From Zygophlyctis sp. KS116 (lineage: Eukaryota; Fungi; Chytridiomycota): 32,000 nucleotides of DNA. The translations under genes and the position numbers were made by a program. The stretch is taken from the NCBI GenBank assembly GCA_054661495.1, contig BAAFSQ010000017.1, forward strand, positions 47,314-79,313, in the 5' to 3' direction. Below, in pieces: positions 19,201-31,400 of the stretch. Numbering within the stretch: the first letter of the stretch is position 1; each line of letters starts with the position of its first letter. The notes under the pieces were generated by a model that worked only from the letters and a program-made list of their open reading frames with translations, did no database searches and was not told where the DNA came from.

Positions 19201-22002
19201 TGATCCAACGGATTCTCTGGAAACTTAAAAATTGATACTTCAGATAAGAGATTATCAAAAGCCTCCAAATCTTGACTTGTTTCTAGAAGTCTATCGGGTA
19301 TATGCTTCTTCAATTCCGAGTATGCCAAACCGTTAGAACTACCTAAATGATGAATTATTTCCTGTTTTAGATTTTGAACATGAGAAAGGCCTAATATTTT
19401 GGATCGCTCACTAAGAATGTAAATTAATACTTCAAGCATGTCTTCGTTGATAGATGCTTGCTGAGCAAGGTCAATATTAGCGGCTTTCCCAAAATCCAAC
19501 CAAGTTTTTAATTCAAATCTTTCCACAAGAATGGCAAGGAATATTGATGGCGGCAAAATTGAGGCAGCAGTTTGGATTAGTAGTAGATTACTATCATAGC
19601 ATTCTCTTAGCATCACCTCTCGAAAATGTTGCGCCTGGCTTCTCATCATATATCCATTACGAACCCATATACCAGCCCTGATTTGGGAAAGCATTACTAT
19701 TATCCTCATTGGATAATCAAACAATAGTATGGCAAGATTACCTGCAGTTAGACTTTCTAAATGTTTGGAATAGGATGAGACATTATCTTCAAGTATGAAC
19801 TTTTCCATATTTTCCTTTGAAAATGCCGATTTCCAAACTGTTTCCCCGTCCTTCAAATTGGATGTATGCTCTAGGACATGGGGTAATTTAGAAATAAGCT
19901 CCGCTAAAAGGCAATGTAAGGGATCATAAAGGGAGACCCGATGAAGTGAGACTTTAAAATCCGGCAGAGTAAATGTTTTACATCCAAAGTTGATCTGATG
20001 AAACCCGAATGGAAAATCCAAACTAGCGCTACTATTTCCAGTAGATTTATTATTGTTTTGTAGCGTTTCCTTGACGTGGTCAATAGCACACCAAGTAGCT
20101 AAAGTGAAAACAGTTTTTTTGATGGCCTCAGTTAAATCCAAATAGCATTCATCATAATTTTCATCAGAATATCCAAAACAATCACCCACTTGTCCAATCA
20201 TATTCGACAGCAGAAGTGCAAGATTTAGAGCGTAAACCCAGTGATCGGTTTCATATTCAACATGAACTTGAGTAGACCTCTGCTGAGGTTGCATGCCTTG
20301 AAAAATAATCAGCAGATCCAAAAAGTCTTGCATGTGCTCAGAATATTTTCTAAACAGCTTCTTTTTTACTAAATCAGTCGACAAGACATATCGAACATCT
20401 TGAAAAAGATGCCAATATTTTCTATTCCTGACAATCCCACTTTCGCAAGTCATTCGAGGAAAGATTGACTTATTCATGGTAGAAGCCAACTGATAGCTTC
20501 CCAAAAGATCATATTGCGGTCTAAAATCCTCTGGAATGGAATCTCCTAGAAAAAATCCTTTTAGAATAAAGAATATTGACGAAATCATTTTTGTGTGCTT
20601 TACCAAAAACTCTGCAATAGTGGGAACAGTAAAAAGCTGAACAGTAAAGTAGGTGATTGATAAGTCATTTTCTCGATCATGAAACATGGTATAATTCATC
20701 AATTCTGGATAATGATATGCAAAATAAAGTCCTTGATGCTTAATTAAAATATTCATTACCTAGCTTTTTCTTACTGTAATCGTCCAAAGTAATATAACAA
20801 TTGATAAGCAACTGTCTGAGATTGCTTCTTGGAATTTTCCATAATTTTGTATCAAAATCCAACAAATAATGCAAACGAGATGTATACAAGGAAGAATATG
20901 AAAAATCAGGAATTGGATCTCTTGTTACAGCAGAAATATTTTTGATCATGAAAACATCTGCCAAAGGCTCGACATCTTGAAACTGATTTTTAAAACCCTG
21001 CCTATCACAGGATAATTCAGTTTCCAATAATTTCCGAACAAAAACGTCCAAAGAGTTCCATTCCAAAGTTTTACTTGCAAGAGTTAATTTAAACTTTGAT
21101 GAAAACAACTTTGGAATATCCTGGACTAACCATGCTAAAAGTTCAGCTGCTAATTCTTCTTGAAATGCACGTTCATCTGTACTTATCGAGACAGCCAAAC
21201 CCGTTTCAGCAACCACTCTTGCAGCATCAATTAAAGAATGAATATCATTTGACCTAGAGAATTCTGCTCTCCCCTATTATAAGAAAACTTTTATAGAAAA
21301 CCTTTTCATCCACTTCTTCTGCAATAATTTTTCCTTGAGAATCACTACATCCTATCCCATCCACCAATTGATCAATAACTTCTTGAAAAGAATGACTTTC
21401 ATCATTCCATAAATATCCAATAAATTCTATTTGAGTAGTGATTTGTTTCTCAACCATTGCCAAAACCTCTGCTGGCGTTGGTAATGTCACATCTAGAGGC
21501 GACGATTCAAAAACATTTAGAACAAAGTCCAAAACCATTCCAAAACACAATCTCAAATGATCTTCAACCTTCTAAATTTTAGAAATAAAGATTAAATTAC
21601 ACTTGGCATATTAATTTCTTGACTCATCTTCAAATCCGAATGAATTCTACAAAATATATCTACTTTCCATGCTTCCTTGTCACCACAATCACAAAACCCA
21701 CTCATCCCCTCGGATATTGAGAAACCTGTATCATGTCCCGTATGATCGCTCGCTTTAAAGCAATCCACACATAAAACGCAAGTATCATCGAGAGCACAAG
21801 TCTTACATCTATAAACTTGTTCTCCTCTACTAAAGACATGCCCACATATGCTAGATTCAGTTACAGCCTCCCCAAAAGACTTTAATTCCCAATCATCTGC
21901 TTTTAAAAGGAAAGAGACCAAGTTCCTCTTGATGTGATCAATTGTTATCGGCGGTCTTGAATTTAAAAGCAAATGCAATTGATCTTTCTTTGATTGCATC
22001 AT
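16204..22002 (-). CDS. UBR1: N-end rule E3 ubiquitin ligase Ubr1; introns 21572-21600, 21274-21301, 20732-20759, ~16470-16495
   Basis: UBR box [26 protein letters not shown]...CDCGDKEAW; ClpS-like [13 protein letters not shown]; WVRNG; RING-H2 CIVCQE...SSCGHLMH..C...EFLCPLCK; C-terminal [22 protein letters not shown]. Confidence 0.96.
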
Positions 22003-22092
22003 CTATAAAGCTTTCCCAAATCTTTGGTCAAGGACAATGACTGAGGAGCAGAGATCAAAAGACACAAGTTCAGCCAACTCAGACTTTTAATA

Positions 22093-22879
22093 ATGATCTT
22101 CATCGCTCTCTTGATTCAAATTGTTGCTGCTCTTGACTGTTCTACTTCTTCCGACACTGCATGTTTTGTACGCAATGCACAATATACGATACTTGGAACG
22201 GTTGTTGATAATTCTGTCGGACGTGGAAATGATACTTCAAAGAGTTATGATGCTTCTATCGCTGTACAATGTGTTTGGTCATCTTTTGTTCCTGGTAATA
22301 TTCCTGGAAACGGATGGGGTAAGTTGATTTAAATTTATATACTATTAGGAATGGCAAATAGTATAATTACCGTTAAAGGTATATCTTGAAATTTAAATTA
22401 TCTTTTAGGATGGGGAAAACCAATGGCTGGATGTCCGAATGGTGGTGGTGCAGATGCAACTTCTGGGACTACTCAAATTTTCTTTGTTTATATTACTCAA
22501 GGTATCTTTCAAATTACTAATTCCAGGTGAATTAGGTTCAAGAAGTGCCATTTATGGTGTTGCTAATCAATGTCAAGGGGGGATAGAGTATAATAATGAA
22601 AATATTCAAATTATTTCAAATGTATTGGCATCTGCTCCTGGTAATTTTATAAAATCATTAATTTTAGCTTCTAGAATTACAAAAGCAAATATTGGAACTA
22701 ATCCTCAATGTGTTTTACCAGGTTCAAATGGAGGAAGCGGGACTGGAGCTGGAGCTGGATCCGGATCTGTTAATTATGTTTCATCCCCTTCAAAGCCATC
22801 ATTAGTATTAGATCCAAAAGCTTCAAGATCAGATGCAATTCTACCTTTAGGAATATTGAGCGTAATTTTGCTAATGTAA
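22093..22879 (+). CDS. Secreted, probably GPI-anchored Cys-containing protein with an NtA/TIMP-like OB-fold domain; introns 22319-22348, 22379-22408, 22502-22526, 22641-22667
   Basis: Signal peptide MIFIALLIQIVAA; AQYTILGTVVD..YDASIAVQCVW..IITVKGWGKP...C..SGTTQIFFV; Gly/Ser linker; hydrophobic C-terminus SDAILPLGILSVILLM*. Confidence 0.65.
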
Positions 22880-22897
22880 CAATTGTAAAAAATGTAT

Positions 22898-23689
22898 TTA
22901 CGTAAAATAATTCAACGTGTTTCTTGATAATATTGACACTGCCATTTCTAAATCCCAACCTTTAACATTTGCTACTTTTTCTAATATTTCTTCCATACAA
23001 CCATCTAATTTTGCTATGTCATGACAATCGGATTCAATAAGAATTCTGTCATCTGGAATAGATAATACAATTTCCTGAAACCTACTTGATCGTAGACTAA
23101 CAGCCAAACTTAGACTAAAATAGATTTTATGACCGATTCCTTTAATTTTGAGTAATCTTTTGATCATATCTGAAGATCCATTAAAACTATGAAGCATAAT
23201 GGTCGGTGGTGATTTTTCTATTTTAGAAATGAAATCATATAATTTCCCTGAAACTTGTACTGCATGAATAGACACTGATCGTTGTAATTCACAAGCAAGA
23301 TTAAATTGAGCATTAAAAACTTCAAATTGAGTCTCGTAATCATACTTGAGTCCGGTTTTTGGATTTTTAGCAGATCCATCTAATCCAATTTCACCAACCA
23401 ATGCTTGTGGCGATTGAATTAATTGATTCTTTAAATCTTGTAGCCAATCAGCATCAAGACCTTCAGAAAACCAGGGATGAATTCCTTTTATAAATGATCA
23501 GATCATACCATAAAACTCTAGAAACTTGCCAGTTTTAGCGTTTGCAACCGATTGCAATTTAGGCCAATCGCTGGGTCTTGTGCTCATCAGCCAGATTTTA
23601 CCTGTTTGACAGTTGCTATTGATAATGGATGGAGAGTCAATAACATGGGAATGAACATCAGTGAGCAGTGATAAATATTTTTTTGACAT
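22898..23689 (-). CDS. tatD: TatD-family metal-dependent DNase; intron 23485-23508
   Basis: DVHSH, FYG|IHPWF, VGEIGLD, VSIHAV, MLHSF, IPDDRILIESD: all canonical TatD motifs. Confidence 0.92.
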
Positions 23690-23694
23690 GAAAA

Positions 23695-25106
23695 TTACAG
23701 ACTTGGAGTGACGCAAAAAGGATCAGGAATCATGTTTGATCCATCTCCAGGTATCGGTGGGAATTGACGCATCCAGCAGTATTCATAATGGCAGTCAGGC
23801 AGTACATTTAGATTTGGAACATCAAAGAAATGCGCTTGACAATCATTACAGCAAATACGACTCCTTATAGAATTTGATACAGAATCCAGCATTGGTGAAT
23901 AATGAAATCCGTTTAGTGATAATGCATTTAAAGATTCTTCTGGCAATGTAGGGCAAGAATGAAGCATATCTTCTCTATATTGCTGTGTTCTATCATCAAT
24001 CACATATTGTGGATTCTTGTAAGTAGCTAAACGTTGTTGAATTTTTAAGTATTCTACCCATTTCAAAAGAGCGAAAATAACTCTGGAAAATTCTGCACAT
24101 ACTATTTCATTAGTTAATTATGCATATTACCTCCATCTGATAGAAAACGTAAACAAAAGACTGAAGATTTTTCTTCTGGAATACATTTAATCTGACTTTT
24201 ACATAATGAAACCTTTATATTTTTGTATGAGTCTGGTAGATTTCCAAAAATATGTGATAAAAAAACATCGGTAGATATTATATCCGCTGTATTAATACAA
24301 TTATGCCCAAAAGTAGAAAAATATACATCTTTAGGAGTGAATTGTCTAATTCTAGTTTCAAATCTTTCTCTTACTAACCATAAATAAAATTTCAACTTAC
24401 AAGTCATATTTAGAGCCAACGTCCTTATTCCATAGAGATAATTTGCATTTAAATGTATCTTGTTTCCAAATTTTGTAAAATATAGGACAACCGGTCCTTT
24501 ATTAATCCACCTTTTTTCCTCTACTGAATATTTTTGCAGAGTACATATAAAAGAAGGAGGTTGATGCATACATTTTGAATTTTGTAAAACATGATGAAAC
24601 GTATGACTTCCTCTGAAATTATATTTTTCAGCAGATTGACTATTATACTGAGTATGTGTAACTACATCTTGATCAATTTCTACATCTGAAGGCCAAAAAT
24701 CTGATCTTCCATCATCAATCTGATCTTTTATATTTTCAGTAGTTTCATATATAGCATTATCTTATTTTAGATTTTAGTAAAATATACGAGGTTCCTGCTG
24801 TTCATCTTCTAATTCATCAATTTCCGTTTCCGTTCCTTCATCGGTACTTGTGCCTTCAGTACTTGGTTCAAAAGTATTATCTTCCTCTGTCGTTTCTTCA
24901 TATCCCACTAGTTCATGATTCGCAGTAATCGTTTCCATTGAATTTGCTATTAAATGAATATTATCATGAAAACCTGCTGCTTCTGCAATTCTCGAACTTC
25001 TCCTTTGAACCTCCATATTTTTCATACAAGACTGTAATTCTAAAAATCAGTATTTACAGACAGTACCATTGTAGTCAGAGCTTGAAATGACTGGAAATCC
25101 ATTCAT
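23695..25106 (-). CDS. Protein with acidic N-terminus, RanBD/PH-like domain and C-terminal C3HC/BIR-like zinc finger; introns 25040-25066, 24761-24787, 24613-24640, 24374-24400, 24102-24130
   Basis: Splices into one frame from MNGFPVISS. CTLQKYSVEEKRWINKGPVVL...LALN...FCLRF (RanBD-like); RLATYKN...LSLNGFHY...CNDC-x16-H-x3-CW (BIR/C3HC-like). Confidence 0.55.
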
Positions 25107-25309
25107 TGCGTCAAAATCAGTCAAAACACGAAGAATCTTCGCGTTTTTCATGTTTTCGCGTTGCACAACTTGCGCCAACCAGACAAATTGACTCCGCAGT
25201 GCTAGACCGTTTGAATTTGACTGCTGGATCCATAAATGAAAATTTGAAATCATTTTCTGATGCATTTTCTGATGCTTTTGATCAGGAGAAAAATTGGTTC
25301 CGGAAAATC

Positions 25310-27277
25310 ATGCATTGGTGGATAATCATTCTTGTTCAGTTCTCCGCACTTCTCGCTGTCGATCATAATATTCAAAATACAATCAATCATCTAACTAATC
25401 ATTTGTCAAACAAGGGTAGATTTCACTATTTAATACTAGATTCTAATCTGATCAATAGCATCAGAACTATTAATGTACATGGCAATTCACCAACTTTCCA
25501 TGTAGTAACTAATCTAGAGCCATTGTCTATGGGTACATTGAAACTTCCGGCAGTGATTTGGATTGGAATAAATGGTTATAATGTCACTAAATATATTTCA
25601 TCAACGCCAAATTATGAGGGGTGTTTATTAAATGATCCCTCTACAAAAGTTGTTATACGGACTAATATGATCTATGGATGGTTTAATAAGCCGAAAGTAT
25701 TTATAAATCAGTTATTGAATACTAAAAAATCTGGAATTCTGCTGGACTATGATATTAGGCATTTGATATTGGTAACTCTTGACGTTAAAGATTTAAGTTC
25801 AAAATACAAAAATTTAGGAACTGGAATAATTCAATTTCCAAGCTTTCAGATTATTGGAACTAAAATCTACGTTATTATTAAAGGAATGGTTAAAAATACT
25901 AATTATATTTTGTATTCTGGGTATCAGAGGAATAATTTTAATGATCATGTACATGTAAAAGCATTCTGGGATCGTGAAAAGTTTCAAAATGAATTAGGGG
26001 CTCTCAAAAGTTTTGGTAGATTATACGATTCAAATGATAAATATATGATACTAGCAAGCAAAGCAGTTGAGGGATATACGCTCAATTACTTGTTAGAACA
26101 CTTTTACAGAGATCCTGAATATGTCTTAAGGCTGATTGATAAAATTCAAATTTCTATTAAATTGCTTCATTTAAAATTTGGGATAGCTCATCAAAATATT
26201 AACGCTGAAAATATAATTGTACAGTCTGATGGATCTTTGGAATTTATTAATTTTGAAAATGCTCGAAATTACCATATAAATTATATGCTTAACCATCAAC
26301 TTTTACAAAATGATTTGGATTCAGCAGAAAAATCATTGAAAGCTTTTAATCAGGTTATAAATGCTTTTAGGACTCCATTAGCACTTACTTCTCAGCGTTT
26401 TTTTAGGAAATACGTTTCAGATATGGTTAAGCTATATGGATCTGAAGCTGCTCTACATCTTTGGGAAGTAACAAAGAAACAGAAGTATATTGATTATATA
26501 AAGAAAAATGGTTACTCTCCAAAATCATCAGAAAACCTTGCTAGACGCCTTAATGCAGCAAGTCAAGAAGATTCAGAAGAGCCATTATGTATATTTGTTG
26601 GCGTGAATGAATATATCATCACTGACTACATTTCTTCAGGAGCTCAAGGATCAACTTTTAGAGGATATTTATCTCAAGATCCAAATGAAAGAGTTGTATT
26701 TAAAATATACAAAGAGCCTAATGCAAGGAAGGCTTTTTTTACAGAAAAAAGAGCCTTGATCATTCTCGGTAGATTATATGATGAAGATTTGTCAAATTTA
26801 ATAACCGTACAAGAAGAAATTCCTGGCCAAGTGTTATCAAAATGGTTTATTAATCATGATAATATTTCAGAAGAAGTTGCTTTTAAAGAAGCTATTCAAT
26901 TATTATATAATTTTCAAACGGAATGGAATTTAGTTCATAACGATGTCCGACCAGAAAATATTATTCGAAAGCCTGATGGTAAATTAGAATTGATTGATTT
27001 TGGATACTCTGACATTCTTTCTGACAATAATCTTACATACAATCAACAGATCAATAAGGATTTTCAAATTGCTAAAAGAGAATTTCGGTATTACTTTTTA
27101 GCCTTAGAGGCAAAAATAGCCATGGAAAACCCATTAGAACCAGGATCAGAATCAGTCGTCAAAAAGTATGTAGACATGCGAAGCTCTAGAGGAGATCCAT
27201 TTGGAGCGAGAAAATATTGGTCAAACTTTCGGTATAAATTTTTCAAATTATCTAGCATGAAAATGCACAGTGATTAA
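25310..27277 (+). CDS. Secreted 655-aa protein: signal peptide + degenerate kinase N-lobe + pseudokinase + minimal (Bud32/RIO-like) protein kinase; no intron required
   Basis: Likely start ATG 25310 (MHWWIIILVQFSALLA). Pseudokinase: IAHQNINAENII..EFINFEN. Intact kinase: SSGAQGSTF, VVFK, TEK, VHNDVRPENII, IDFG. Confidence 0.75.
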   Translation: MHWWIIILVQFSALLAVDHNIQNTINHLTNHLSNKGRFHYLILDSNLINSIRTINVHGNSPTFHVVTNLEPLSMGTLKLPAVIWIGINGYNVTKYISSTPNYEGCLLNDPSTKVVIRTNMIYGWFNKPKVFINQLLNTKKSGILLDYDIRHLILVTLDVKDLSSKYKNLGTGIIQFPSFQIIGTKIYVIIKGMVKNTNYILYSGYQRNNFNDHVHVKAFWDREKFQNELGALKSFGRLYDSNDKYMILASKAVEGYTLNYLLEHFYRDPEYVLRLIDKIQISIKLLHLKFGIAHQNINAENIIVQSDGSLEFINFENARNYHINYMLNHQLLQNDLDSAEKSLKAFNQVINAFRTPLALTSQRFFRKYVSDMVKLYGSEAALHLWEVTKKQKYIDYIKKNGYSPKSSENLARRLNAASQEDSEEPLCIFVGVNEYIITDYISSGAQGSTFRGYLSQDPNERVVFKIYKEPNARKAFFTEKRALIILGRLYDEDLSNLITVQEEIPGQVLSKWFINHDNISEEVAFKEAIQLLYNFQTEWNLVHNDVRPENIIRKPDGKLELIDFGYSDILSDNNLTYNQQINKDFQIAKREFRYYFLALEAKIAMENPLEPGSESVVKKYVDMRSSRGDPFGARKYWSNFRYKFFKLSSMKMHSD

Positions 27278-27428
27278 TAGAATAAATCTGTAAAAACATT
27301 TTATAGAATTGGCTGCGAATCGGATTTTCATGCAAATCTTCCATTTTAGCCGATGCTAGCATTCCTTGCCTTTGACCTTGCAAGCCTCTTATGATATCAG
27401 CTGATTTGACCATTTTGACAGATTTGAC

Positions 27429-28470
27429 ATGAAAATTGTATTATGTAATATTATCGCTCTTTTAATGCTCTCTGTGGAGGTGATCGGAGGTAATTTACTC
27501 CACAATAATAATCTTAGGACCTGTAGCCAATTTTGAAACGATCAAATATCCAAGACGATTTTTTGGTCCGCTTCATCAGTTTCTAAGATCGCATCAGAGT
27601 ATCAATATTTTATTAAACGGAGAGTCTAGTTTTCATCATTTTACCGCCAATCTAGGGAAAAATCGTTATGTGATTACTGATTTCCTAACGGCTTTGGATA
27701 ATGTCTATTATTATCAAGGACATATGGAATATAAATCCAAAGATTTTATTATAGTAAAGGTTTTTGGGAAAAGATCAGTGCATAAATACTATGAAGAATT
27801 AAGAAATTCGGTTTATGATAAAAGTAGGCATGTGGTGGATAGTGATAAACAAAATCATATAATTGTGGAAAAGGTCAAAAGTCCATCTATTGTAACTCTC
27901 TATGATGATTCTCGATATGTTCTTACAAAAACAGTAGAGGCTAATCCTTCATTAATGGTGTGCTTTGGACATAAGATGAAAGACGAGCCGATCAATCAGG
28001 TTATACTCAAATTTTATGCGGGAAAAAAAGGTCTAGTAGAATACAGAAAAGAAAAGGAGTGTTTGAGAAGTTTAGGGAGGTTAATAGCTCATGATGGGTT
28101 ACAGCTCATACTGATCGAAAGAAAAATTTGGGGAGAAACTTTGCAAAATGTATTGGATGCTGGATTGATAGAGCCTGAAGTACTGTTGGAAAAGTGCCAA
28201 AACTTACTCTATAAACTCCAAAACAATTTTGGTTACACTCATAAGGACATAAACGCTTCTAATATTATAGTAATGAGGAACGGAGATGTAGAATTTATCA
28301 ATTTTTCCAAATCTGAACGGTTATCTAGTGATCCAGAAAGAGCATCAGACGAAAAAATAAAGGATATGATTGATTTGCTAAAGATTTTCAAGGACAGAGT
28401 CTCAAGTTTACATAGCGGCTCATTCAGTTCAGTAGTCAAGGATATTTTAGATTATTATGAGATAATTTAA
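27429..28470 (+). CDS. Secreted paralogous (pseudo)kinase: signal peptide + degenerate N-lobe + kinase-like domain; intron 27490-27517
   Basis: MKIVLCNIIALLMLSVEVIG joined in frame to ORF 27670 by a 28-nt intron. VILKFY..KEKECLRSLGRL..WGETL..THKDINASNIIV..EFINFSK; DFG replaced by NFS, no Gly-rich loop. Confidence 0.72.
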
Positions 28471-28478
28471 ATCATTTA

Positions 28479-31400
28479 TTATTTTTTAGTAAAACCACCA
28501 AGTGCAAGTGCATGAATACTTTTTCCAAAGTTTTTTGTTGGAACGGCCTTGAAGGTTCTTCCACCAGAATCATATTTATAAAATTCAGCAACTGTAGAGG
28601 CGTCTATTAAGTCTGGACCTAAAGAGTCCTTGTAGAGTTTTACGGCAGTATCTGAGACTTGATCATAAACGTACAGTCCTTTGAAAGAGAAATTGTTTAC
28701 TTGACGGAAAAGAATAAGAAAATGAGTAGAGTTTGATTCCATGAGACTCTAAAATTAGTATCAAAGATTTACATTCAAAACATTTTGTTTGACCTGTTCA
28801 TTCACTTTACCAGCAAGGCAGACGTGAACTAATGCATTCTTGATGAGATTTCTATTAGAAAGTTGCTTCTGCCTGGGTATTGGTGGTGATTTCTTTAGCT
28901 TAATGGTATTCCTTTCTTTGGTATCATTACATGCTAAATATTATATTGGAAACTATATACATGAAGCTGTATTCTTTTCTGTTGATATGCACTTAGATTC
29001 TGCTGCTCTACAAAATTAGAAGTATGAAACTAACATTTTATCATTGTCTTCAATCTTTCTTTTGTAATATGGACTGGGAAGCCTCTTTGAATCCTATGAT
29101 TAATTAGATATAATTATAATACATTCTTTATCGGTTCAGATGGAGCATTTATATTTGAAGCTCCAGAACCTCCTCGTTGAGAAACTCTAGAAAATGTACG
29201 ATTGAGATTTTTAACCTCGGGTTCATCATTCAATGGATAAAATACGAGCCCTTTGTGAGAATCAGACTCTGTATTATTATGTTCCGAGTCTTTAGATATC
29301 AAAACATTTTTGCTACTTTCACCATTTTCGTCACTCGCTTTCGCAGTTATAGCATTTGTAAGAGAAACAGAAATCCTATTTTCTGTTTTATCAAACTCTT
29401 GAATTGAACTTCTTCTCCTTGAATTTTTCCTGGACACAAAAGTGAAAGATCTCCTCTTATGCTTTGGTTTCTTCTCGGGCTTGACATCCTCTTCTTCCGA
29501 TTCCCACACATCTTCCTTTTCTTCTGAGTATCCGCTTTCAACTCTCTCATTCGCATCGTATAAAGTAACTTCTGAACAATTTTTGCGAACTTTTATCTCT
29601 TCCGGAATTTCTTGAATTGATTCATGTATCTCTTCTTTTTCATCAAATTCATACTGTAAATATACTTTCTCTTCCTGAATAGATGAGAATGATTCAAGTG
29701 AATCATGGTCTGAATCAGCGTTCTCGCATCTAACTTCTTCTAGTATTTCAACATTATCCACAATCAATTTTTCATCATCTTTAGGCTCCTCATCTAGTAA
29801 AAGATTAAAAAGCTTTGGATTAAATGTAGTTATAGTGTTTTCTCCAACCTCATCATCTTCAAGTTCAAACGTGTGTTCAATAGGTTCTACATCCGATGAT
29901 GGATCACAAGGAGGAAATGTTGAAAACTCTTGATCTTGATCACAGGAAACTTGTTCTTGGTTTTGTTCGAGTATCAGCGAATCATACTTCAAAGAGTTTT
30001 CTTCTGGTATATCTTCTTCGTCAATTCTGTCCAATTCTTCAGCAATAAGAGCATTATCTATTGATATTTTCTGACATTCATTTATTCCATTGTTCTTTTC
30101 ATCAAATGATTCTTTTCTGATTTTTGAATCCATTTCAATCGTTATAGTGTCCATGTCTCCTTTGCTATGGGATAATTTATCGGATTGTATTTGAGAATTA
30201 CGCAACTCCACAGTTTTTAATTGGGTGCTAGAAAATTAAATACAATCAAGACCTACTTTTTTCTATAAATAAGCGGTGGATGGTTTTCAAAATGCTGAAA
30301 TAAATTCAGTAATAGTGTCATAAAAACTCCCTTTAACTGAATAGTAAACACAGAGAGTTCATGAGGAAGCCACGGTACAATTACACTGTTCCATTTAGAG
30401 CAGATATTTTTAATCGCTTCAAAATTATCAAAAGAATGTTCTGAAATTAAAGTAGACTCGTTATAAATTGATATGATTGCCAAGACAACTTTTCCATCTG
30501 CCAAATCTGAAACAAGATCATCCATTTCTAGTATCCGGTTCGTATTACTTAATTTATTAAATTCCATGATGCATTGATTACACCAAATTAGTAATGCGTC
30601 CTCCATATCAAATGGATACAATAAATTTGAGTCAAAGCAAGGGAATTGTCTAAAATGTTAAATTTTAAGATTTACTCCAAATGTCCTACTATCCTTTCAA
30701 TCGTTAATTCCCTTACACTATAGCTCATTATTGCATTTATAATATTGGAGTGAACCGACTAAAATTAGCATTTAAAAATAAATACCTCATAAAATGGTGC
30801 TTTTGAACTGGTCATAGTCTTGAACGAATCTAAACTGGAAGACTTATAATTTAAATGTCCTAATTCTGTCAGAGAATCCAAGAACCGGCCATTGTTTTTG
30901 TGACATAAGCTTTCATTCAAAGAAGAGCCACATTTATGCATACTATCCATTAAGTAATTATATAATTCCGATGAACATAAAAGGGCTACCAATCTTGAGG
31001 ATATTAATGATCCCTTTTTTAGTTATTATAACATTTTTATTATACCTCTTTATCCAAATCTTGAATCAATTCCCCCATTTTGACTTTTTCAACACTTTGG
31101 GTATCTGACAAAAAAGATTGATATTTCATCAAAGTCCATCTTAATAGAATTTTGAAAGAAGTCTATAACGTTATCAATTGGTTTAAATACTTCTGAAATG
31201 GAATAATCTGAATCTGTAACCGATTCTTCGTTTGCATCAATCACCTCTATTTCATCCTTTTTGATCTCTTTCAGGTCTTGTAAGCATATGATTTCAGCCG
31301 AAGGTGCGATTTTGCGATTTACTGATTGCTCATATGATCGTTTGAGAAAGTGAAGAAATCGTAAGCATGATGACGGATCACCAACTTTACATAATTCTAA

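Follow-up and report, generated by a model that had tools for sequence, protein, structure and literature searches.

Two adjacent genes in the window (the whole 32,000-nucleotide stretch of DNA that was analysed) encode a pair of proteins that are built from repeated units of one compact kinase fold. Gene 1 consists of a leader, an orphan kinase N-lobe (1A), a pseudokinase (1B) and a catalytically complete compact kinase (1C). Gene 2 consists of a leader, a second orphan N-lobe (2A) and a second pseudokinase (2B). Both belong to a family that is real, has no description in the sources searched, and is lineage-specific and metagenome-only so far. Taken as a whole, the data are probably best explained if the genes form a conserved tandem pair and the family, restricted to one lineage, consists of compact kinases and pseudokinases of the secretory pathway; as part of this explanation, the organism is read as an uncultured freshwater zoosporic fungus, chytrid- or Rozella-like. 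The coordinates of all features are collected in Table 1.

The repeated architecture can be observed with several methods. A preliminary description of this DNA had reported a unit of ~75 amino acids (aa) that occurs three times in gene 1 and twice in gene 2, and shuffled alignments, a hidden Markov model (HMM) of the family and profile alignment with hhalign agree on this count. In Smith-Waterman alignments evaluated against 300 shuffles, 1A matches the N-lobe of 1C with a z-score of 16 and 2A matches it with a z-score of 10.6. The N-lobes of 1B, 2B and 1C match each other with z-scores of 8.6-9.9 and the full modules 1B, 1C and 2B with z-scores of 17-25, while linker and N-terminal controls gave values of ~0. 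The family HMM (profile A1, made from 13 full modules) matches gene 1 at aa 80-156, 177-420 and 425-650 and gene 2 at aa 66-139 and 149-334, so that the module coordinates given earlier proved correct within a few codons. A second profile, made from 11 orphan units (A6), was aligned to the full-module profile with hhalign and falls onto its N-lobe columns 1-86 (98.9%, E 1e-17).

Judged by its residues, 1C is the only one of the five modules that is catalytically complete. Next to the Gly loop, the beta3 Lys, the catalytic loop and the DFG motif, it contains the alphaC Glu (E479). The pseudokinase 1B retains the beta3 Lys, the alphaC Glu and the catalytic-loop Asn and has no Gly loop. The Gly loop is also missing in 2B, which carries HKD in the catalytic loop and NFS at the DFG position. 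In 1A and 2A the C-lobe is wholly absent. Three residues do not vary over the 13 modules of A1, even where a module is dead: the beta3 Lys, the alphaC Glu and the catalytic-loop Asn. All motifs named in the preliminary description could be found (SSGAQG, VFK, HND..PEN and DFG in 1C; HQN and NFE in 1B; HKD, NFS and no Gly loop in 2B), and its view that one module in five looks active holds, as the full catalytic residue set is confined to 1C. The loss of the Gly loop alone is no proof of inactivity, as can be seen in WNG1 from Toxoplasma (PMC6442604). In the orthologues of gene 2, HKD is replaced by HNK or HNN and NFS by DFS or DYS. The Asp of HKD is thus not kept, which argues for 2B as a pseudokinase as well.

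The searches, alignments and folding of gene 2 were carried out with exon 2 alone (window 27520-28467), and the only uses of the joined two-exon protein were residue numbering, the hydrophobicity calculation and the HMM scan made locally. AlphaFold2 (AF2) modelled gene 1 from a 65-row alignment with a mean predicted local distance difference test score (pLDDT) of 81.7 and a predicted template modelling score (pTM) of 0.64, and exon 2 of gene 2 from a 68-row alignment with a mean pLDDT of 88.5 and a pTM of 0.71. By module, the pLDDT is ~80-95 in 1B, 93-98 in 1C, ~90 in 2A and 95-98 in 2B. The models of 1A and 2A contain three to four strands, a long (alphaC) helix and two further strands, and this order matches the N-lobes of 1B, 2B and 1C. 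The earlier assignment of the N-terminal units as kinase N-lobes is thus borne out by homology (z-scores, HMM and hhalign) and by the predicted topology. In the full modules, the part that follows the DFG position is modelled as a long alphaF helix with two or three family-specific helices. The APE motif of the activation segment is absent in the sequence and the GHI subdomain is absent in the AF2 models. The modules are therefore compact kinases and lack the full canonical fold of the eukaryotic protein kinases (ePKs), as far as the models tell.

Profile matches and catalytic residues place the modules, at the level of sequence, in the protein kinase superfamily as ePK-like members. Gene 1 as a whole matches Pfam Pkinase (PF00069) with 42.9 bits against a cut-off of 31.7, and 1C by itself scores 29.8 bits, just under that cut-off. 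At E <= 0.01, 10 of the 13 family modules match Pkinase. More weakly, family members also touch RIO1 (three members), APH, ABC1 and choline kinase. For the window proteins, no match to RIO1 (PF01163) was found at E <= 10. OspG_kinase (PF22303) is absent from the Pfam matches of the window proteins and the family modules, FunK1 (Pkinase_fungal) is absent from the Pfam lists at E <= 10 and E <= 0.01, and the Fam20 and CotH models gave no Pfam match. Sequence matches in the PDB are partial. In the language-model atlas, gene 1 falls with generic or minimal kinase clusters only, many of them viral and one of them an OspG cluster; the orphan unit gave no usable match in this atlas, and the structure atlas returned generic kinases.

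The fold of the full module (2B) was also compared to 48,161 PDB representatives with VIA-align, bearing in mind that searches with whole models are dominated by the full module. RIO2 ranks first (Z 17.0). Below it, interspersed with many ordinary kinases, come RIO1 (16.4), a lanthipeptide-synthetase kinase (16.1), LegK4 (15.4), Bud32 (14.3), OspG (14.0, 156/169 residues) and NleH1 (13.6), and no Fam20 chain stands among the top structural matches. Foldseek is concordant, with PRPK among its matches. RIO and Bud32/PRPK, the best structural matches, are of similar size and likewise have no APE motif and no GHI subdomain. The window modules, however, carry ePK-like motifs (GxGxxG, HxDxRPxN and DFG), whereas the RIO motifs are of the type STGKEA and IDxxQ, and they do not have the RIO-specific N-terminal helix. 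In addition, RIO and Bud32 have housekeeping roles in the cytoplasm, and neither leaders nor tandem modules occur in them. The resemblance to RIO is structural only.

In the genome, profile A1 separates 12 full modules (E <= 1e-49) from the ordinary kinases (E >= 6e-12). The family comprises ~11 genes on contigs C17, C624, C255, C354, C46, C66, C187 and C43, and its members form tandem pairs on C624 and C255 and on two more distant eukaryotic contigs (L019 and L020). P0001 and P0002 were the only matches of a word-based protein search with 1C or with complete gene 1. For this reason an exhaustive profile search was run, and this search yielded 58 representatives at E <= 1e-30. Outside the genome, the family comprises at least 60 metagenomic clusters. 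All of the 20 clusters that were looked up (20/20) are of metagenomic origin (ENA, JGI or Logan), and none has an NCBI or UniRef accession. The family-specific tail is matched by 69 of the best 150 representatives. In ordinary kinases, the alignment with the family profile ends near position 160. The full catalytic residue set is kept in roughly 75% of the family modules. Orphan N-lobes recur in P0005 (two units), P0012, P0016, P0020, P0038 and P0048. One family member has been annotated as Bud32 in IMG. In the literature, no description of this kinase family was found; together with the metagenome-only matches, this agrees with the earlier proposal of an undescribed family of the secreted-kinase type. 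That the family is fungal, as was also proposed, is consistent with the several chitin synthase genes in the genome. The Crinkler header domain gave a sub-threshold match only. The ADP/ATP carrier family that is known from Rozella and microsporidia (PF03219) gave no match, but neither did the control search, so that its absence carries no weight.

Contig C255 carries a second same-strand pair (L003:1276-2091 and L003:2433-3566, L011:736-2016). Its first gene is a leader-bearing active kinase and the closest paralogue of 1C, and in its second gene an acidic linker connects an orphan N-lobe to a degenerate module (NVN, DLD). About 120 nt past the stop of the first gene there is a candidate leader micro-exon. 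On another contig (C692:2486-2734) only the tail is matched (profile positions 154-226, E 5.5e-8), which could be a fragment or a divergent member.

The pair is preserved in related lineages. Contig L015, from a lake metagenome, shares 96.5% identity with the window over 8.9 kb, and relative to it all indels in the two genes are in frame, with none in exon 2 of gene 2. The ratio of non-synonymous to synonymous substitution rates (dN/dS) in this comparison is 0.30 for gene 1 (1A 0.44, 1B 0.25 and 1C 0.09) and 0.32 for gene 2, next to 0.0-0.48 for the neighbouring genes. The orthologues on L017 are more distant, with 43% identity for gene 1 (P0004) and 40% for gene 2. By module, the identity to L017 is 54% for 1A, 33% for 1B, 53-57% for 1C, 44% for 2A and 32-37% for 2B. 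The orphan N-lobe 1A is therefore as constrained as the live kinase. In P0004 the dead site of 1B reads HGNINASN and NFE, so its loss is old and has been maintained. The leader micro-exon of gene 2 and the 24-28-nt phase-1 intron behind it are found in L015, L017 and L018 (24 and 28 nt in L017 and L018); in L015 the ends and the length of the intron are kept, with three substitutions inside. Gene 1 and gene 2 are adjacent in L015, L017, L016 and L018; in L016 and L018, gene 2 begins directly behind the end of gene 1. Read from these sequences, at least four lineages have kept the adjacency together with the leaders, the orphan N-lobes and the dead motifs.

The hydrophobic stretch is confined to the N-terminus in both proteins (KD19 exceeds 1.6 nowhere else). 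In the leaders KD19 reaches 1.47 in gene 1, which is below the usual transmembrane threshold, and 2.3 in gene 2. Neither C-terminus carries KDEL, HDEL or another retention signal. The mature proteins (316-634 aa) contain only 2 and 3 cysteines and 2-3 N-glycosylation sequons each. Leaders are found in most paralogues. Genome-wide, at least six family genes have a leader within the open reading frame (ORF) and three more have candidate leader micro-exons, and the paralogous leaders end in cleavage-type sites such as VYS|LST and LSG|AKV. Among the metagenomic members, 11 of 42 have a leader despite prokaryote-style gene calling. Both proteins are thus apparently secreted and without a membrane anchor, on the basis of hydrophobicity heuristics and leader conservation. 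The leaders and the lack of an anchor had been put forward in the preliminary description, and the conservation in orthologues and paralogues speaks for both.

Two observations concern the regions around the leaders. On L017 (L017:5719-6001) the gene 1 leader MWCFIILLQLSVLTA is out of frame with the main ORF. Since it lies in a different frame, gene 1 has a leader exon and an intron there, whereas it is a single-exon gene in the window. In gene 2, the segment between the leader and 2A (YPRRFFGPLHQFLRSHQSINILLNGE, 27547-27627) is the best-conserved part of the protein, with 62% identity to L017. Its PRRxF.PLHQFL core is kept in three lineages, and AF2 predicts two short helices in it. The RR pair of the core might serve as a dibasic propeptide site of the Kex2 type or else in targeting.

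How might such a pair work? In the proposed mechanism, the leaders would act as cleaved signal peptides and the proteins would leave the cell. The active module 1C would then phosphorylate proteins outside the fungal cytoplasm, most plausibly in a host cell. The availability of ATP and the few cysteines favour the host cytoplasm over open water. The pseudokinase and orphan N-lobe units would serve as regulatory or docking scaffolds in cis, and the product of gene 2 would be a separate partner. A role in host manipulation is plausible, and a luminal, wall or membrane-displayed role is possible.

The alternative that survives best is that of secretory-pathway or cell-surface kinases that modify the fungus's own proteins, either in the lumen of the endoplasmic reticulum or Golgi or at the wall of the zoospore, cyst or sporangium, with a function like that of Fam20C or CotH. 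Such enzymes would have the same leaders and no anchor, the many chitin synthase genes indicate a genome that builds walls, and the Golgi lumen contains ATP, as is known from Fam20C. However, the missing retention signals, the very low numbers of cysteines and sequons and the lack of a Pfam match to Fam20 or CotH all point away from it. Furthermore, tandem duplication, degenerate copies and a patchy, metagenome-only spread are typical of interaction families with fast turnover. We regard this alternative as unlikely.

Less likely again is an uncleaved signal anchor, by which the pair would be type II membrane proteins, with the kinase modules exposed on the outside of the parasite plasma membrane or of an organelle. 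The h-regions of 14-16 residues, the KD19 of up to 2.3 in gene 2 and the gene 1 leader without small residues at -3/-1 would fit such proteins. On the other hand, the gene 1 leader stays under the usual transmembrane threshold, and the paralogous leaders have ends of the classical cleavage type.

It is very improbable that only 1C matters and that gene 2 and the dead modules are duplicates in decay that have no function themselves: the dN/dS of ~1 for 2B relative to L015 (10 changes) and the position of 1B and 2B as the least conserved parts (32-37% to distant orthologues) would fit decay, but the reading frames are open in all lineages, the leader micro-exon and intron of gene 2 are conserved, HxN and NFE are kept at 43% overall identity, the three invariant residues persist in the dead modules, 1A is as conserved as 1C and AF2 is confident for all units. 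Pseudogene decay was rejected on these grounds.

In a tree of the N-lobes (87 columns), 1A groups with 2A and then with 1B, and 1C falls beside the kinase from the C255 pair that is active. From this tree, an orphan N-lobe and a pseudokinase seem to have been duplicated together as a cassette, which would be fused to the kinase in gene 1 but stand by itself in gene 2. On C255, too, a cassette with an orphan N-lobe lies beside an active kinase. Going further, it may tentatively be proposed that the N-lobe without a C-lobe is an autonomous, selected domain and that, together with the pseudokinase, it makes up a portable cassette that regulates the kinase or captures its substrates, in cis in gene 1 and in trans via gene 2. 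We consider this extension doubtful.

Several points weigh against the interpretation as a secreted and host-directed tandem pair. At -3/-1 the gene 1 leader fits a cleavage site poorly, so that it may be a signal anchor. The kinase activity of 1C is predicted from its residues only, and the host-directed and allosteric roles are inferred. The counts behind the dN/dS values are small, and the ~1 of 2B rests on 2 synonymous and 8 non-synonymous changes. In the N-lobe tree, long-branch attraction may have brought the degenerate units together, and the alignment behind it is short. The whole neighbourhood of the pair is syntenic, so adjacency need not mean functional coupling. As to expression, two lake metatranscriptomes each contain one identical contig (26276-26546 in gene 1 and 28121-28309 in gene 2). 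These RNA contigs are short and possibly DNA carry-over, and neither spans the intron at 27490-27517. The window stretch itself is present in freshwater metagenomes from 19 studies.

In comparison to known systems, the pair resembles other secreted kinase families in kind and is a member of none. ROP18/ROP5, Fam20C/Fam20A and plant tandem kinases had been named as parallels; these stand as functional analogies, but do not extend to family membership. The fold is a compact kinase nearest to RIO. The ROP18/ROP17-ROP5 and WNG proteins of Toxoplasma likewise form a secreted kinase family with many pseudokinase paralogues, tandem duplication and leaders. The ROP kinases (ROPKs), however, are known only from the Apicomplexa; they have the full ePK size, include a GHI subdomain and carry an N-terminal extension specific to them. 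No ROP structure is found among the top fold matches, and the likeness is one of analogy. Fam20C/Fam20A shares the kinase-pseudokinase pairing and the secretory-pathway idea with the window pair, but belongs to a different atypical fold family. Plant tandem kinase-pseudokinase proteins share the idea of pairing; they are cytoplasmic, full-size and without leaders. OspG, NleH1/2 and LegK4 from Legionella are compact kinase folds that are exported into host cells and match the window module in structure. They are, however, bacterial proteins that are injected by type III or IV systems, and contain neither orphan N-lobes nor fused pseudokinases. For a stand-alone kinase N-lobe, no described counterpart was found in the literature, and we know of none.

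A further comparison is that to the microsporidia. In two species, the lineage-specific, signal-enriched large gene families include protein kinases (PMC5423893). These expansions are of a similar general kind and occur in fungus-related parasites; the comparison was made by description, and orphan N-lobes are not described there (PMC5423893). Kinase families that are expanded and predicted to be exposed to the host have thus been reported before, for two microsporidia (PMC5423893), and a system of this general type is no novelty.

In apicomplexan parasites and bacteria, families of secreted kinases and pseudokinases are central to virulence. For the uncultured zoosporic fungal parasites that are widespread in lakes, by contrast, knowledge of the effectors is close to nil. 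The family provides a concrete and testable set of candidates (~11 genes here and at least 60 metagenomic clusters) with a compact fold and a stand-alone N-lobe. If the dead units do regulate or aim the live kinase, pseudokinase scaffolding could be studied in this pair as a simple system found in nature, and if the cassette proposal is true, it would represent a new way of building and controlling effector kinases. In metagenomes, the family might in addition be used to trace these fungi.

Table 1. Features of the kinase/pseudokinase pair, with positions in the window
Feature	Position	Strand	Basis
Gene 1, one exon, 655 aa + stop	25310..27277	+	ORF, first ATG 25310
Gene 1 hydrophobic leader MHWWIIILVQFSALLAV, putative signal peptide	25310..25360	+	hydrophobicity; identical in L015
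1A, orphan kinase N-lobe, aa 80-157; VAIK Lys -> Arg; no Gly loop	25547..25780	+	HMM, profile positions 1-78
1B, pseudokinase module + family tail, aa 177-420	25838..26569	+	HMM 227 bits, profile positions 1-235
1B catalytic loop HQNINAEN, catalytic Asp -> Asn	26189..26212	+	motif reading
1B NFE where DFG expected	26249..26257	+	motif reading
1C, compact kinase, catalytically complete by residues, aa 425-650	26582..27259	+	HMM 273 bits; Pfam Pkinase
1C Gly loop SSGAQGS	26633..26653	+	motif + alignment
1C beta3 Lys K465 (VVFK)	26702..26704	+	invariant in family alignment A1
1C catalytic loop HNDVRPEN	26936..26959	+	motif + alignment
1C DFG	26996..27004	+	motif + alignment
ATTTGAC-type mini-repeat directly 5' of gene 2 start	27395..27428	+	copy number strain-variable
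Gene 2 exon 1, leader micro-exon, 61 nt, encodes MKIVLCNIIALLMLSVEVIG	27429..27489	+	KD19 2.3
Gene 2 intron, 28 nt, GT..AG, phase 1	27490..27517	+	frame restored on joining
Gene 2 exon 2, 317 codons + stop	27518..28470	+	ORF; no indels vs L015
2A, orphan kinase N-lobe	27652..27873	+	HMM 23 bits, profile positions 6-79
2B, pseudokinase module	27901..28458	+	HMM 182 bits
2B catalytic loop HKDINASN	28240..28263	+	motif reading
2B NFS where DFG expected	28300..28308	+	motif reading

The pair is located on contig C17 of a 12.7-Mb assembly with 1175 contigs, in an AT-rich window (GC ~33%) where housekeeping genes of ordinary eukaryotic type surround it. The ATG of gene 2 (27429) lies 152 nt 3' of gene 1 on the same strand. 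The mini-repeat in front of it is longer than in the window by 14 nt in L015 and by 18 nt in run X4, and the upstream repeat motif GATTTGAC is not enriched elsewhere in the window.

The gene order of UBR1 N-recognin, ClpS-like, zf-UBR, TatD, the two kinase genes and CAMSAP CKK is kept in L015 and L017. This conservation (window 20325-29277) is complete down to ~40% protein identity, and the spacers are very short. The exon that encodes the CAMSAP CKK domain (28479-28742, - strand) begins 8 nt past the stop of gene 2, so that the two genes are convergent with almost no spacer between them.

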